Source of the DNA: Geosiphon pyriformis uo1
Lineage: Eukaryota > Fungi > Glomeromycota
Assembly: GCA_016748015.1 (NCBI GenBank)
Contig: JAAOMT010000097.1
Location: 124,001 to 188,000 of the forward strand
Direction of reading: 5' to 3'
DNA: 64,000 nt
Numbering within the stretch: the stretch's first letter is position 1; each line of letters begins with the position of its first letter. The translations under genes and the position numbers were made by a program. Positions 21,836 to 53,926 of the stretch are shown piece by piece. The notes under the pieces are model-generated. The model saw nothing but the letters and a program-made list of their open reading frames with translations. It ran no database searches and was not told the origin of the DNA.

Positions 21836-21954
21836 AAATTACGGCACTCTGTATTCCCGCGTGGTCCCCCACCGCAGTACTGACAGAGCCATCAGTGGCT
21901 TAACTTCGGAGATCGGACGGGTTCCGGTGCTTTTCACTGTGTATGGCCGTAATT
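21836..21954 (-). rRNA. 5S rRNA gene, dispersed single copy
   Basis: Reverse complement AATTACGGCCATAC..AGCACCGGAACCCGTCCGATCTCCGAAGTTAAGC..GTACTGCGGTGGGGGACCACGCGGGAATAC..GTGCCGTAATTT is about 119 nt with paired termini and ends in a T-run (Pol III terminator). Confidence 0.97.
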
Positions 21955-48512: not shown

Positions 48513-48683
48513 ATTGCCTCAAATTAATGAGTAAGGATAATATAGGATTTGGGTGATTCCAGTCCATTCAGTAGCTATTGCTCTGAAGTAATCACCAAAT
48601 ATTTGGAGGAATATAGATCGGTCTCGTGGAGTTCGTTTACACTACTTCTGTAAACTTGTTCTCCAGTGTTGCTGGTCTTCCTT
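48513..48683 (+). ncRNA. RNU12: U12 minor-spliceosomal snRNA
   Basis: 5' ATTGCCTCAAATTAATGAGTAAGGATAATA resembles the conserved U12 5' end (UGCCUUAAACU.AUGAGUAAGGAAAA), including branch-pairing GTAAGGA at 48531-48537. Hairpins ggatttgg/ccagtcc and ttcagtagc/gctctgaa; Sm-like aatatttgg; long 3' stem (agga/tcct, agatcggt/gctggtct, tggag/ctcca, gtttaca/tgtaaac) capped by loop CTACTTC. Confidence 0.92.
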
Positions 48684-49912
48684 TTACACTCCGTGGTTTA
48701 ATTTAGAACCTTTATCAGTTTTTGTATTATCTAAGTTGATGTTCTATGAAATGACCTAAGTAGCGAATTATCTGAATTTTTAACAACCGAGTATTCCCAA
48801 ACGGTTTCTTTTGTTACTAGGAAAAAGGAAACACTGAACTTGAACTCCAATTTTCGGCCTTTGTCGATCTGCAATTTTAGAATTGACAATGGGAATTTAT
48901 GTAGTTTTAATTAAATTACAAATTGAATTACAATGAAAGTGAAAGAACTATAAATTATTTTGTGATTGAATGCCATGTTTGAGAACAATTTTATAAATGG
49001 GAGTTTTCTTAAAACTGAACATTATTTTGCATTCCTTTCAAGCTATGGTAGCTACTGAATCGAACTCAATTGGCTTGCATTTAAATGAAAAATATTCAAT
49101 TTAGCAAGAAAATAAAAGTGGAAGTCTTATTTCCAATTCGATTCTTCATATCACCGAGAGATCTTAGCAGACTAACGAAAGATGGTAGTCTTTAATATCG
49201 AGATATTGATACCGAGTTCTTCAACTTAATTATATACATTTACCAAAACCATATCGATCGAGATAAAGTTCCATCTAAAATTTATGAAATTTGCCTTATT
49301 CAAATTGAGTTATCAGTCGTAATAGGATAGCGCATCATAAAAGATATAAAGCTTTGTTTGACAACCCGAAAGGATTAACGATGACGATCTCAACTTGGGC
49401 GGCTACGATTGGTCCGAGAATGATGTGATTTTAGCTTCGTACTCCTTACAAACTCGAAAAAGTTTCTAATATACCTTAGAATAGTCAAAACGACATTTTT
49501 TGGTATTTTCGGGATTTTCTTTCCTGCGAATTCCAGTTGTCTGAGTTTTATTCCCGCTCTGCAAACCCGACTGACTGGGTGTTTCTGTCTTGAGATGCTT
49601 AGGGGTAATTTAAAAGCATCTATCCCAATTGGTTTGGGATGTCAAATAGGTGTCAAAGCGACATGACACATCTTTATCCTAAGTGTCGCCCACTGGCAGA
49701 GCACTTGGAGAAGTTTCCTTCCCCAAATATAGGATAAAGAAAGGGAAATGCGGAATGCTCAGGGTAATTCTCCAGGGCAGAAAATCTTTGGAGTAGTCAT
49801 CTCTTTAAAGAAAACAAAGATCAATAGAGAATTCCTTTCCTTGAGAAAACCATTAACTATAGTTAATTGAAAAATTGTTACTTACACCTCCAAAAGTTTA
49901 TAATGAAAATCG

Positions 49913-52092
49913 TCATTGATCAAACATGCTCTCAAAAAAATCATCCTCAGTCATTGAGGGGCAAAAGCCGGACTGAAAACTTTGTCCCTCATTAGTAAAT
50001 GTCTCAAGACTCGCATCCTTTGGCAAATTATGTGTTCCAAAACGCTCAGAGGCTACCACACCGTGATATAAAGGAGATTGTCTTATTAAAGTTTTGTTGA
50101 ACTGACCATCTTGATGATTAAAAATGGCTTCGAACTCATCAGAATTTGTCCATTGATCCTCATCTTCCTTATCAGGAACCGTTTGACATGACGAAGGTGT
50201 AATATCTTGAACTTCATATATTAAGCCACTGTGCTTATTTGAATCGGCTTTAAATTGTCTTTCATCACCAAAGCCAAGTTTATAATGGGAATCCATCTCG
50301 TCCATCTCTTCCCAGAAATTTTTATCATGCTCTAAATCTGAATCGTTATTTCCTGCGAAACAATTAATATAATCCATGTATTCTAAATCTCCTCTTTTAT
50401 CCGCCATTTCAAAGATTTCTTCATCATGATCTACTGTTGTATTTGAGTCGAATAATTCATTTGTAGAGTCGTCAAAACGTTGAATCCCTGGTATATCTTC
50501 CGGATAAAAAAAGCTGATTGGAGATGGGTTTAAATTCTGGGCAGCCTTCTTAGGATTTTGTGGCGATGCCTTTAAAGATTCGCTGTCGTCAAACTTGCAG
50601 TTCTGAAATTCATCCTCGCTTGAAGACTATAGATGTTTGAAAATTATCTGAATAAGACGATTCTTTCAAAAAAAAATATGAAGTTTAATACCTCTTGAAA
50701 TAATATTGCCGGTATTTTGAGATTTTTGGCAGCAGCATATAAGCCATCAGCAAGAATTATCTTTGTCTGTTGTTGCGAGCTGACCAAATTTTCTTCGTGA
50801 GGTATCGGAAAATTTAAATCAACCCTCTTTCGAATCCGCTGAAAAGCATAGGAATCATCATAAATGCTATGAAAATAAAATATATTGCATTTTTATTTTT
50901 TTCACGTTACCTCTAGATATTGATCTGCCTTATATTGAAAATCTTCATTAACACTTGTACAAATTATCCGCGTCAAAGAATTCGAAATGTTTTGAACGTA
51001 TTGTGTAATAGTTTCAAGCTTCTGCAAATTTGGTAAGAAATAATGAGAAAATTTGACAGTAAAAGACAAAATCATTGCAATGATAAATTTATATTACAGT
51101 TTGATAATCTGGAGAAAAAATTAAAGGATATCTTTCAACCAACAAATTTCGCATAATACTTCGAAAAGCCGTATCAATCGCACATATTTCGAATGAAGCT
51201 GTCTCCTTACTATTCCTCATTAACTCGTGGCGCAGCGATGCTACGTGTGTAAAATTTTGCTTGTCAAGCATAATAGAAAACGCTTTTGGTTGAAGAAATA
51301 CACGAATGCTGCAGAAAAGGATATCTATTGCAACCCAATTGAAAACAAAGGTCAATTTATTTAAGTTCCCGAAAGGTCTTCGATCGGATGAGTATGGTAA
51401 GGAACAATTACCAGACGCGTGTATCCAGTATTCTATGAAATAAATACTGAGTTGTTATTTGACGGCTAGATGTTGAATTTGAGACGAGATTGATAGGGTG
51501 AACAATGTTTCACCTACCTTTATTAAATTGTCGTGATGGTTCAGCAACGGATAACATGGTGGAGAACCCAAATTTCCGCCATATCTTATGAAAATTAAAA
51601 TTTCATCAATCCATTCCTTGATTCTATAATAAATCTTCCAAATATTCAACGTATATTTACCTCTGGTCGGCAAAGTCGTTTTAAAATGATGTGTTCTCTT
51701 TTAGAGCTCAAACTATACAATTTACCGTCAATTCTATTTACAAAGTGATTATATACAAAAAGACTGGCTAAGGAAGATCATATTTCAAAGATCCCGTAGA
51801 CTTTCTTTTAAGCTCTAAAGACGAAAGAGGATATATTAAGACGAAGTTTCCCGTCGTATAGAACAACGTCCATTTTATTCATGTCGTCTTCACTCAGTTC
51901 GCGCATGTTTGGGAGTAACTGCACGTTATACTCGACTTGTTGGAGGCAACTCACTTTCAGTATGTGAAAGCTTGGATTCGAGTTGGTTGCTACCCCAATT
52001 TTCAAGATCTCGGGTGTTAAAGAAATAGAGGACGAGCGTTCAACTATATGGTTTGGAAGCGTTTGAGTAGAGACGCTTCTATTAAGCAACAT
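49913..52092 (-). CDS. Candidate TopoVIB-like meiotic DSB subunit (TOP6BL/MTOPVIB/Rec102-type transducer) with acidic disordered C-tail; contains two AT-AC introns and a 2-nt exon
   Basis: Spliced reading ..MDVVLYDGKLRLN|FVNRID|E|IWRKFGFSTM..KLTFVFNWVAID|VASLRHELM..IDTAFRSIMRNLLVERYPLIFSPDYQT|KLETITQYVQNISNSLTRIICTSVNEDFQYKA resembles the W..(Y/F)G motif and the C-terminal transducer helices of TopoVIB-like proteins. Confidence 0.62.
51247..51324 (-). other. U12-type AT-AC intron (78 nt, in-frame, stop-free)
   Basis: Donor ATATCCTTTT, branch TGCTTGAC, acceptor ACAC; length is a multiple of 3. Confidence 0.75.
51745..51834 (-). other. U12-type AT-AC intron (90 nt)
   Basis: Donor ATATCCTCTT, branch TTCCTTAGC, acceptor TCAC; removal bypasses the stop ending ORF 51808-52092. 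Confidence 0.8.
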
Positions 52093-53926
52093 GACTACCG
52101 TGTCAAAAGGAAGAATAACGCATCAACATATTTTTAAACAACAGATCACTTCTGCATGATTGTGACGTCATAGCGGTGACACAAAAAAATGCGTTCCCGA
52201 GACCTCTGAATTTTTTTCTAATATGAATTGAGACAATTGTTTTTTCTAATTTTATTAGGCACCAACTATGCCAGAGAAAGCATGTCGGAAGTTGGTAATG
52301 ACGAGTGGGTATGTGAAGAACAGCCCGCTTCGGTAGTTCGGTTTGCTTTGTTCAATAAGATGCTTTGCTTTTCTCTTGTTCGCTAGATGATAATTCCAAA
52401 AAAGAAAAGTTTTTGCAACATAATTCAGCAAGAAGCTGTTACCTAAATGCTAGTCTGTCCTGATCCTACCACACTTGAGTTCTTTTAGGAGTATATTGCC
52501 AACACATCGAGTCTACAAATATTGGAACATACTTATGATCAAATATTTCGAAATAAATTAAAGAAAATGAAAAAAAAACAATGAATCTATATAATTGAAT
52601 GAGATTCTTTCTAACTCTCTGCTCCCTTTTGATAAGAAGCAAGGGATGCTTGCCATTAATTGCAAGCTGATTTACAACTCACTAAGAACTGGCACATCTG
52701 AGGCAGCTGATTTATGATTTTAGATGAGTACATTTATTTTTAGGGTTATTAGAATACCGAAATTTTACTGCTGGATCTGAAGGGTATTTAAAAGTCTTAA
52801 GAAGAGTTGAATTTTTACTCCTTTTACTTTGATTCGATCTCGCCAAGAAGGTTAAATAAAAGTTAAAATCTTAAAATTTTAGACGTCATCTGGGATAAAA
52901 TGTTATCCACAATCGGGCGCACCGTCACTTTTCAAAAATTTATTGAAAATAAAATTTTATAATTATAAAAGTTTAGACAATTGCAAAAATAATTAATAAA
53001 AAACAAAATAATTTTAAAACAATTGTACCATTTTTAAATATACATTTAAAATTTGTTTTATTTCAGATTTTAAAATTCACATTATTAACAATTAATTGAA
53101 ATTATTTATTGTAAAAAAAGGTTATTTTGTAATTATATAATTAATAAAAATATTAAAAAACCAATTTTGCAGCAATAAATTTTATATAAAAACTATTTAT
53201 AAAACATTTAACTAAATTTGTAATATTAATGTCTTAAAATTATAAATTTATTATCAAGAACAATAAAAAAAAATTAAATTTTAAATTTTTAAATTTTAAA
53301 CAAATAATTTTAATAAATAATATTATTTATATATAATATATTTATTATTGTGTAAATTTTATTTTTTAAACATAATACTAATAATTAATTTGTAAAAGCT
53401 AAATTATTTATTATAAATTTTTAAATTTATGCAATTTTTTTTATTTTTTTTTATTTGCTTTTATAAAATATGATTCTATTATTATTTATTTGAATTTTTT
53501 GACTTTGACAATATAAATTTATGTTAACTAATTAAAAACTAAATAAATTTTTTTGTTGCTTTTTTGATAAATAATAACAGCAAATACTTATTTACATATT
53601 TTATATATAAATCTTGCTTATTTTATTTTTTAATTTGTTGTATAATTCTTTAACTGTTTTATTCCAATATAACATATTTGTAGTAACAATATTTTATTTA
53701 ATGCATTTATGTTAATAATTTATTTAAATCCCCAAGTGATTTTTTATTTCCACCAAACATTCGGTAAGTTTTTCTAGTAACATATGTACAATTATTTATG
53801 GGTTTAATAGTGAGGATATGGCATAAATTGATTGGCTAAAGTGAAGATCTACAATGTCGGAGATTGAGATCACATGACCTAACACTATTTGTAGGGTGTC
53901 TGCGAGAACTCGTTCGCGTCATAGCC

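Follow-up and report, generated by a model that had tools for sequence, protein, structure and literature searches.

What does a minus-strand gene encode when its pieces join into one frame only after introns of a rare class have been removed, and does its product belong to the meiotic machinery? The question is raised by positions 52092 to 49913 of a 64,000-nucleotide stretch of the genome of the glomeromycote Geosiphon pyriformis uo1 (contig JAAOMT010000097.1, positions 124,001 to 188,000; this whole stretch is referred to below as the window). An earlier note, made from the letters of the window alone, had read the locus as a cryptic gene for a TopoVIB-like partner of Spo11. The surrounding DNA is AT-rich (GC content of the window, 33%), and within it the fragments of open reading frame join in a single frame, from an ATG at 52092 to a TGA at 49915-49913. 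They form one gene of eight exons that encodes 545 residues in its productive model and is single-copy in its own genome (an assembly of 128.3 Mb in 792 contigs). [quoted passage not shown]

A conserved glomeromycotinan family

Homologue searches were run exon by exon, while the joined 545-residue model was translated and aligned locally. A stop-free query of 111 residues (51430-51098, reading from exon 4 through intron 4 into exon 5) returned the public model of this gene, P0001 (618 residues), together with full-length relatives, and two further searches reported about 28 proteins, all from Glomeromycotina. At least 11 genera carry an orthologue, namely Gigaspora, Cetraspora, Dentiscutata, Racocetra, Rhizophagus, Glomus, Funneliformis, Acaulospora, Entrophospora, Ambispora, and Paraglomus. 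The earlier note had tied the interest of the gene to a glomeromycete host, and the exclusively glomeromycotinan origin of the orthologues agrees with this; the exon-based protein searches found no relative outside Glomeromycotina. The orthologues that bear a name are called hypothetical or unnamed, and the public entries list no Pfam domain for any of them. Ambispora supplies the closest relative, 45% identical over the whole protein, which agrees with a source probably near Archaeosporales. The 545-residue model can be aligned over its entire length with the orthologues, the helices of which hold invariant residues. The extreme C-terminus, DDFFESMFDQ (49916..49945), is likewise common to the family: its pattern is roughly ED-x-FF-D/E-x-MF-D/E-E, and all relatives end with ..FF[DE]xMF[DE][EQ]. 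Between the helices and this motif lies an acidic tail (49946..50626) of low conservation that is probably disordered and that, searched alone, returned no homologue among proteins of 130-415 residues.

Profile and structural similarity to Rec102

Pfam analysis of the family reports a single recurrent match, the REC102 family PF21736, which 8 of the 14 members match at E ≤ 1 (best E, 6.5e-5). The matches, all of them under the curated cut-off, are collinear, residues 75-253 of the Gigaspora orthologue (P0004) covering positions 5-171 out of 197 of the profile. No HATPase-type match was returned for the family members scanned, and the scan of the Geosiphon gene exon by exon gave nothing meaningful. 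Against the six-frame translation of the genome PF21736 was blank, but the controls were blank too.

The fold was modelled with AlphaFold 2 (AF2) on residues 1-321 of the Gigaspora orthologue P0004, from an alignment of 20 sequences, with a predicted local distance difference test (pLDDT) of 72.6 and a predicted template-modelling score (pTM) of 0.73. The model starts with a sheet of long strands, followed by two short helices ending at a conserved tryptophan, by more strands, and by four long helices. Foldseek analysis of this model against the PDB (350,542 chains) places first chain 8urq_B of the Spo11 core complex (E 5.5e-3, probability 0.92), and several TopoVI-B chains are among the other matches. 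We take chain B of 8URQ to be Rec102 (264 residues), which its residues 2-258 fit, and not Rec104. When the Foldseek candidates were realigned with VIA-align, 8urq_B superimposed with a Z of 10.8 and a root-mean-square deviation of 3.9 Å over 200 of 227 residues (model 15-320 to chain 2-258). An unbiased VIA-align search of 48,161 representatives reports the equivalent chain of a second entry, 8uru_B, at a Z of 10.5, as the sole chain with Z ≥ 8; next comes the Methanosarcina mazei TopoVI-B chain 2q2e_B (Z 6.9, transducer residues 332-467), while generic ribosomal-protein-S5-domain-2-like folds stay at Z 5-6. In a shape search of the ESM Atlas, rows 1-4 are all clusters of the 'type 2 DNA topoisomerase 6 subunit B-like' kind, from plants and chordates, with TM scores of 0.47-0.49 over about 219-228 residues for rows 1-3; the feature search of the Atlas with the Gigaspora orthologue returned no usable match. 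The sub-threshold Pfam signal of REC102, the top structural match with Rec102, the TopoVI-B chains behind it, and the TOP6BL-like clusters of the Atlas thus support the TopoVIB-like identity put forward in the earlier note.

The order of secondary structures in the model follows that described for Rec102, which comprises a six-stranded sheet, the tryptophan of a WKxY motif after short helices, a switch loop, and a kinked stalk, and whose helical hairpin sits on the winged-helix domain of Spo11 (PMC11746154). In the Geosiphon gene, exon 3 (51518..51584) opens with the IWRKFGF peptide (51584-51564), quoted in the earlier note along with AFRSIMRNLLVERYPLIFS and YVQNISNSLTRIICTSVNEDFQ, all of which are present in the translation. 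The tryptophan of IW[RK][KQ]FGF is kept in at least 90% of the family members; in the model it is W116, at the end of short helices 104-110 and 113-117, and a turn and a strand (121-126) follow. This residue is a candidate for the tryptophan of the WKxY motif, being placed in the model as described for Rec102 (PMC11746154). As the sheet comes first in the model, whose residue 15 already pairs with residue 2 of Rec102, a GHKL domain is absent, and the protein as modelled is transducer-only, as had been proposed: the orthologue model starts directly with the transducer sheet. Such a Rec102-type reduction arose repeatedly in eukaryotes (PMC9665070).

Gene structure and U12-type introns

Only one public run contains the stretch. 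The splicing of its contigs and the cDNA adapter on them show this run, recorded as uncertain, to be cDNA. The cover of the contigs excludes 50800-51401, hence introns 4-6, and contigs hide minor isoforms. The first contig has its 5' end at 52104, with a template-switch-like adapter, which gives a 5' untranslated region (UTR) at 52093..52104, and it joins 51835/51744 (AT..AC, 90 nt), 51661/51584 (GT..AAG), and 51518/51432. A second adapter-bearing cDNA 5' end lies at 52257 (52257-52300, plus strand), where the neighbouring gene is transcribed divergently; the two starts are about 150 bp apart and therefore the promoter region is common to both genes.

Exon 1 (51835..52092) encodes residues 1-86 and is followed by intron 1 (51745..51834), an AT-AC intron of 90 nt in phase 0. 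The cDNA joint 51744/51835 is unambiguous, GT..AT on the plus strand being AT..AC on the strand of the gene, and intron 1 is real and spliced at exactly 51834..51745, which bears out the 90-nt AT-AC intron of the earlier note. That note had also stated that a single frame is obtained only with this intron removed, and indeed its retention leads to a TAA stop at 51810-51808. The exon of 2 nt that the same proposal included is contradicted by the cDNA contig, in which an ordinary exon 2 of 84 nt (51661..51744; residues 87-114, beginning with TTTGTAAATAG) keeps the frame without any micro-exon; the junctions of introns 1-3 are all joined in the cDNA. As in this cDNA, Gigaspora and Rhizophagus irregularis read ..N|FVNRIDG.. 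across intron 1. Intron 2 (51585..51660, 76 nt) has an unusual AAG acceptor, which is present in the RNA contig, and exon 3 is separated by intron 3 (GT-AG, 51433..51517, 85 nt) from exon 4 (51325..51432; residues 137-173), as defined by sequence and comparison with the orthologues.

Intron 4 (51247..51324, 78 nt, phase 1) is in frame and stop-free, and its retention would add 26 residues. The orthologues lack the residues of 51324..51247 in the alignment, and their length and the conserved donors support its assignment, made from sequence comparison, as a second AT-AC intron. Introns 1 and 4 both have a ATATCCTT-like 5' splice site and an AC 3' end. Intron 1 displays the donor ATATCCTC, the 3' end ATCAC, and a branch-site-like TTCCTTAG located 24 nt before the 3' end; intron 4 displays the donor ATATCCTTTT and, about 17 nt before its terminal AC, a branch-site-like TGCTTGAC. 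The TCCTTRAC-like branch box of this intron class is usually found about 10-20 nt from the 3' end, so that the distance in intron 1 is longer than usual. In the genomic loci of Ambispora and R. irregularis, intron 1 has the same position, phase, and ATATCC donor, and in Gigaspora the same position, phase, and AC end, with the donor letters partly masked by N. The position, phase, and ATATCC donor of intron 4, together with a TCCTTGAC-like box and a ..CACAC|ACG.. acceptor, are also found in Ambispora, R. irregularis, and Gigaspora. The branch boxes elsewhere in the family read TTCCTTGAC in intron 4 of Rhizophagus and Gigaspora, and TCCCTTGAC, at 12 nt, in intron 1 of Ambispora. The full-length message requires the removal of two U12-type AT-AC introns, and its production therefore depends on the minor spliceosome. 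The genome possesses a U12 small nuclear RNA (snRNA) gene, at 48514-48682 on the plus strand of the window (Rfam RF00007, 55.1 bits for a gathering score of 53). It is found about 1.2 kb past the stop codon of the very gene that carries two U12-type introns. Elsewhere in the window, at 21836-21954 on the minus strand, Rfam detects a 5S rRNA gene (RF00001, 102 bits). Minor introns are already known in R. irregularis (Larue and Roy 2023, PMC10639083).

The remaining coding introns are of the GT-AG type, the five introns of this type being short (65-85 nt). Exon 5 (51098..51246), in which the stalk helices start (AIDTAFRSIMRNLLVERYPLIFS) according to the alignment and the orthologue fold model, is followed by intron 5 (51022..51097, 76 nt), whose junction is annotated alike in the orthologues. 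Exon 6 (50911..51021) encodes a helix (YVQNISNSLTRII), and intron 6 (50839..50910, 72 nt) leads to exon 7 (50692..50838), where the Rec102-like domain ends. In the productive form, intron 7 has 65 nt (50627..50691) and opens onto the coding part of exon 8 (49913..50626). Full-length orthologue models read ..ESS[SN][ED][ED].. across this junction, which corresponds here to ..LFQE|SSSEDE.. with the 65-nt form; because of this reading and of the C-terminal end shared with the relatives, the 65-nt intron and the stop at 49913 yield the conserved protein. The second cDNA contig joins 50692/50618 instead, using an AG located 8 nt downstream of the productive acceptor, and thereby removes in addition positions 50619..50626 as part of a 73-nt intron. 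Read from the sequence, the frame of this form meets a stop after two codons of the exon that follows, for a product of about 310 residues without the tail.

The third contig spans what remains of the last exon, stop codon included, and passes over a GT-AG intron of 94 nt in the 3' UTR (49792..49885), 27 nt past the stop, its loose end matching 49762-49791. If colinear with the genome, the transcript contig of the gene should reach about 49290. At 50201, in the acidic tail, the cDNA contig has a G (depth 10) and the assembly an A, which looks like a strain or allele difference. On the minus strand at 50799, a cDNA contig end carries adapter letters identical to those at 52104 and stems either from a start inside the gene or from a cDNA that is incomplete.

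Judged from these sequences, errors at the U12 introns affect the public models of this gene, of its Ambispora orthologue, and of several more. In P0001, exon 2 is missing, intron 4 is retained, and the true stop has been spliced out, with about 80 unrelated residues added; GT-AG gene models did mis-join the gene, which the earlier note had expected them to fragment. The Ambispora (P0002) and R. irregularis (P0014) models bridge intron 4 by makeshift junctions (..DILF|I.. and ..DDIHF|.., respectively). These automatic models are wrong because of the two rare AT-AC introns, and the gene illustrates in detail how gene finders are led by U12 introns to break up a gene.

Alternative explanations

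Several observations weigh against the assignment to the Rec102 type. No REC102 score exceeds about 23 bits, where the curated cut-off is 27, neither the exons of this gene, scanned alone, nor the public model P0001 match REC102 in Pfam, and the profile of the family, run against PDB sequences, recovers neither Rec102 nor TopoVI-B, its sole match being a designed helical protein (E 0.028). The fold was not obtained from the Geosiphon protein itself, the modelled orthologue being 38% identical to it; of the five AF2 models only one is confident, and a previous AF2 run on the R. irregularis orthologue (14 sequences) reached a pLDDT of 36 and was discarded. None of the Foldseek matches among the 350,542 PDB chains reaches E 1e-3. 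Expression timing counts here as well, the RNA coming from a single small cDNA run in which the sole contig spanning the last intron uses the frame-breaking acceptor. Lastly, REC114 (PF03525 and PF15165) was not found in the six-frame genome, in a search that is uninformative because, as for PF21736, the controls were blank too.

Could the resemblance be confined to a common fold? The S5-domain-2-like fold is found in GHKL transducers, GHMP kinases, and RNase PH, and a protein specific to Glomeromycotina might share only this sheet and its helices, fulfil another job, and have no link with Spo11. Many S5-domain-2-like folds do match the model at Z 5-6, the Pfam matches are sub-threshold, and the sequence relatives are found only inside Glomeromycotina. 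However, Rec102 stands 3.6 Z units over every other chain, with about 200 of 227 residues matched, stalk helices included; the next PDB chains are TopoVI-B transducers, four TOP6BL clusters head the Atlas list, and REC102 is the only recurrent Pfam family, which together make this explanation unlikely. The rank of the TopoVI-B transducers as second-best structural matches would also suit a genuine topoisomerase VI outside meiosis, as found in plants, of which this protein would be the B subunit. Such an enzyme is very hard to reconcile with the lack of a GHKL/Bergerat ATPase domain and of any ATPase-type Pfam match in the family, and the accessory subunits BIN4 and RHL1, which track TopoVI, were detected in no fungus by Brinkmeier et al. 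(PMC9665070); we give this reading next to no weight.

The transcript raises a different alternative, in which the locus makes two products, a Rec102-like protein of about 310 residues from the 73-nt form and an acidic protein from an internal transcript starting near 50799 with an ATG near 50747. The only contig across the last intron indeed has the 73-nt form, this same contig ends at 50799 with the 5' adapter also present at the gene start at 52104, and the 73-nt splice brings the ATG near 50747 into the frame of the tail. Nevertheless, all full-length orthologue models are one protein across this junction, with the conserved ..ESS[SN][ED][ED].. reading, Ambispora lacks the extra AG at this place, incomplete cDNA can give rise to an internal adapter end, and other isoforms may be hidden by the contigs. 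We therefore hold two products to be improbable, marginally more so than the mere sharing of an S5-like fold, and retain a single Rec102-type protein with a long tail.

Spo11 and the proposed role of the protein

A gene for Spo11, whose cutting of DNA initiates meiosis, is present in the genome, found in a six-frame search with the Toprim model PF21180, whereas PF04406, for the Spo11 N-terminal domain, was blank in the same kind of search. Its exons, on contig C340, contain DIYYKDVQLFGTQ and the Toprim motif LFDNDPYG, and DIYYKD represents the region of the catalytic tyrosine. The 5' part of the gene (locus L006 of C340, 4132-4663, minus strand) is made up of several short exons that read MEVPITVQ.. 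/ ..VILKIESIIEKLLHDLANG.. / ..SFAVIIRLLEIIHELLVQNTTATKR|DIYY.., and no clear GT donor was found there for the first intron. A second, weak match to the Spo11/Top6A Toprim domain, in an open frame of 97 residues on C701 (921132-924293, E 0.75), may be due to chance or to another Toprim protein. Co-folding of the stalk fragment (P0001, residues 159-296) with two exon-sized pieces of Spo11 (L006, 4377-4496 and 4132-4287, minus strand) gave an ipSAE of 0.01, for a partner of uncertain fold and with no alignment used, and this value speaks neither for binding nor against it.

In the reading that we favour, the first 310 residues or so of the protein form the transducer, with a β-sheet, the conserved tryptophan after short helices, a kinked helical stalk, and an end hairpin. 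By analogy with yeast Rec102 and with TOPOVIBL of mouse and plants, this hairpin would dock on the winged-helix side of Spo11 and aid DNA binding and cutting. The same analogy points to the final helices of the stalk (AID.AFRS.M.NLL..RYPL.FS and the two that follow it) as the putative Spo11-docking part. The acidic tail, of about 235 residues, would then present its conserved hydrophobic-acidic end motif, which may serve as a docking peptide for another pre-DSB factor, in the same way as the C-terminal helix of metazoan TOPOVIBL binds REC114 (PMC9665070, PMC9671922). Binding to Spo11, the meiotic role, and the function of the tail are all inferred from these analogies.

The earlier note had further suggested that meiotic initiation would be made dependent on the minor spliceosome. 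The dependence of the message is a fact of the gene structure, while the idea that meiosis is regulated through it is speculation. One conceivable form of such regulation is a splicing gate in arbuscular mycorrhizal fungi (AMF), analogous to Mer1-controlled meiotic splicing in yeast, in which the U12 introns and the frame-breaking acceptor would block the message in vegetative hyphae and splicing would become productive only where meiosis occurs. We regard this gate as improbable; if it were true, the splice state would reveal the time and place of meiosis in these supposedly asexual fungi.

AMF have long been regarded as ancient asexuals, and their genomes carry Spo11 and other meiotic genes. 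To this set, a conserved, intact, single-copy orthologue in every sampled AMF order, including that of Paraglomus, would add a second subunit of the DSB core. Its conservation supports the view that the meiotic machinery is maintained under selection, and the gene could serve as a second, very specific marker for locating the meiotic stage. No paper linking AMF with a TopoVIB-like, Rec102, or TOP6BL subunit was found in the literature. The known spread of GHKL-less subunits of the Rec102 type would be extended to an early-diverging fungal lineage.

Comparison with known systems

The closest counterpart is yeast Rec102 (8URQ/8URU chain B, PF21736). Both proteins are transducer-only (as modelled for the Geosiphon family), and Rec102 is the best structural match (Z 10.5-10.8 over about 200 residues, 16-18% identity), with a weak collinear similarity in Pfam. 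The sheet, the tryptophan after short helices, the kinked multi-helix stalk, and the terminal helical hairpin correspond, and a Spo11 gene accompanies both. In contrast, the Geosiphon protein, with 545 residues for 264, is about twice as long as Rec102, owing to the acidic tail and its conserved C-terminal motif, which are absent from Rec102; its gene contains seven coding introns, two of them U12-type, and the Pfam scores of the family are below the cut-off. We know of no Rec104-like partner of the Geosiphon protein, and yeast, to our knowledge, is without a minor spliceosome.

Mouse TOPOVIBL/TOP6BL and plant MTOPVIB provide the top shape matches in the ESM Atlas. They are also alike in layout, with a transducer bearing Spo11-binding helices (predicted in the present case), a disordered stretch, and a conserved C-terminal element. 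However, the Geosiphon protein has no GHKL-like domain before the transducer and no detectable sequence similarity to them, and no resemblance of its C-terminal family motif to the W562 helix of TOPOVIBL has been demonstrated. With archaeal TopoVI-B (2Q2E, 2ZBK, and 1MU5) it shares the transducer fold (Z of about 7 over 120-166 residues, chain residues ~330-465), but it is devoid of the GHKL ATPase, of the H2TH domain, and of the long straight stalk, and we do not take it for a topoisomerase subunit.

Regarding the introns, those of the Geosiphon gene resemble the U12-type AT-AC introns of R. irregularis and other fungi that bear minor introns (PMC10639083) by their ATATCC donors, putative TCCTTRAC-like boxes, and AC ends, and the genome has its own U12 snRNA gene. 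They differ from these in that a single small gene holds two of them, each retained across AMF orders, in the long branch-acceptor distance of intron 1 (24 nt), and in the in-frame, stop-free sequence of intron 4.

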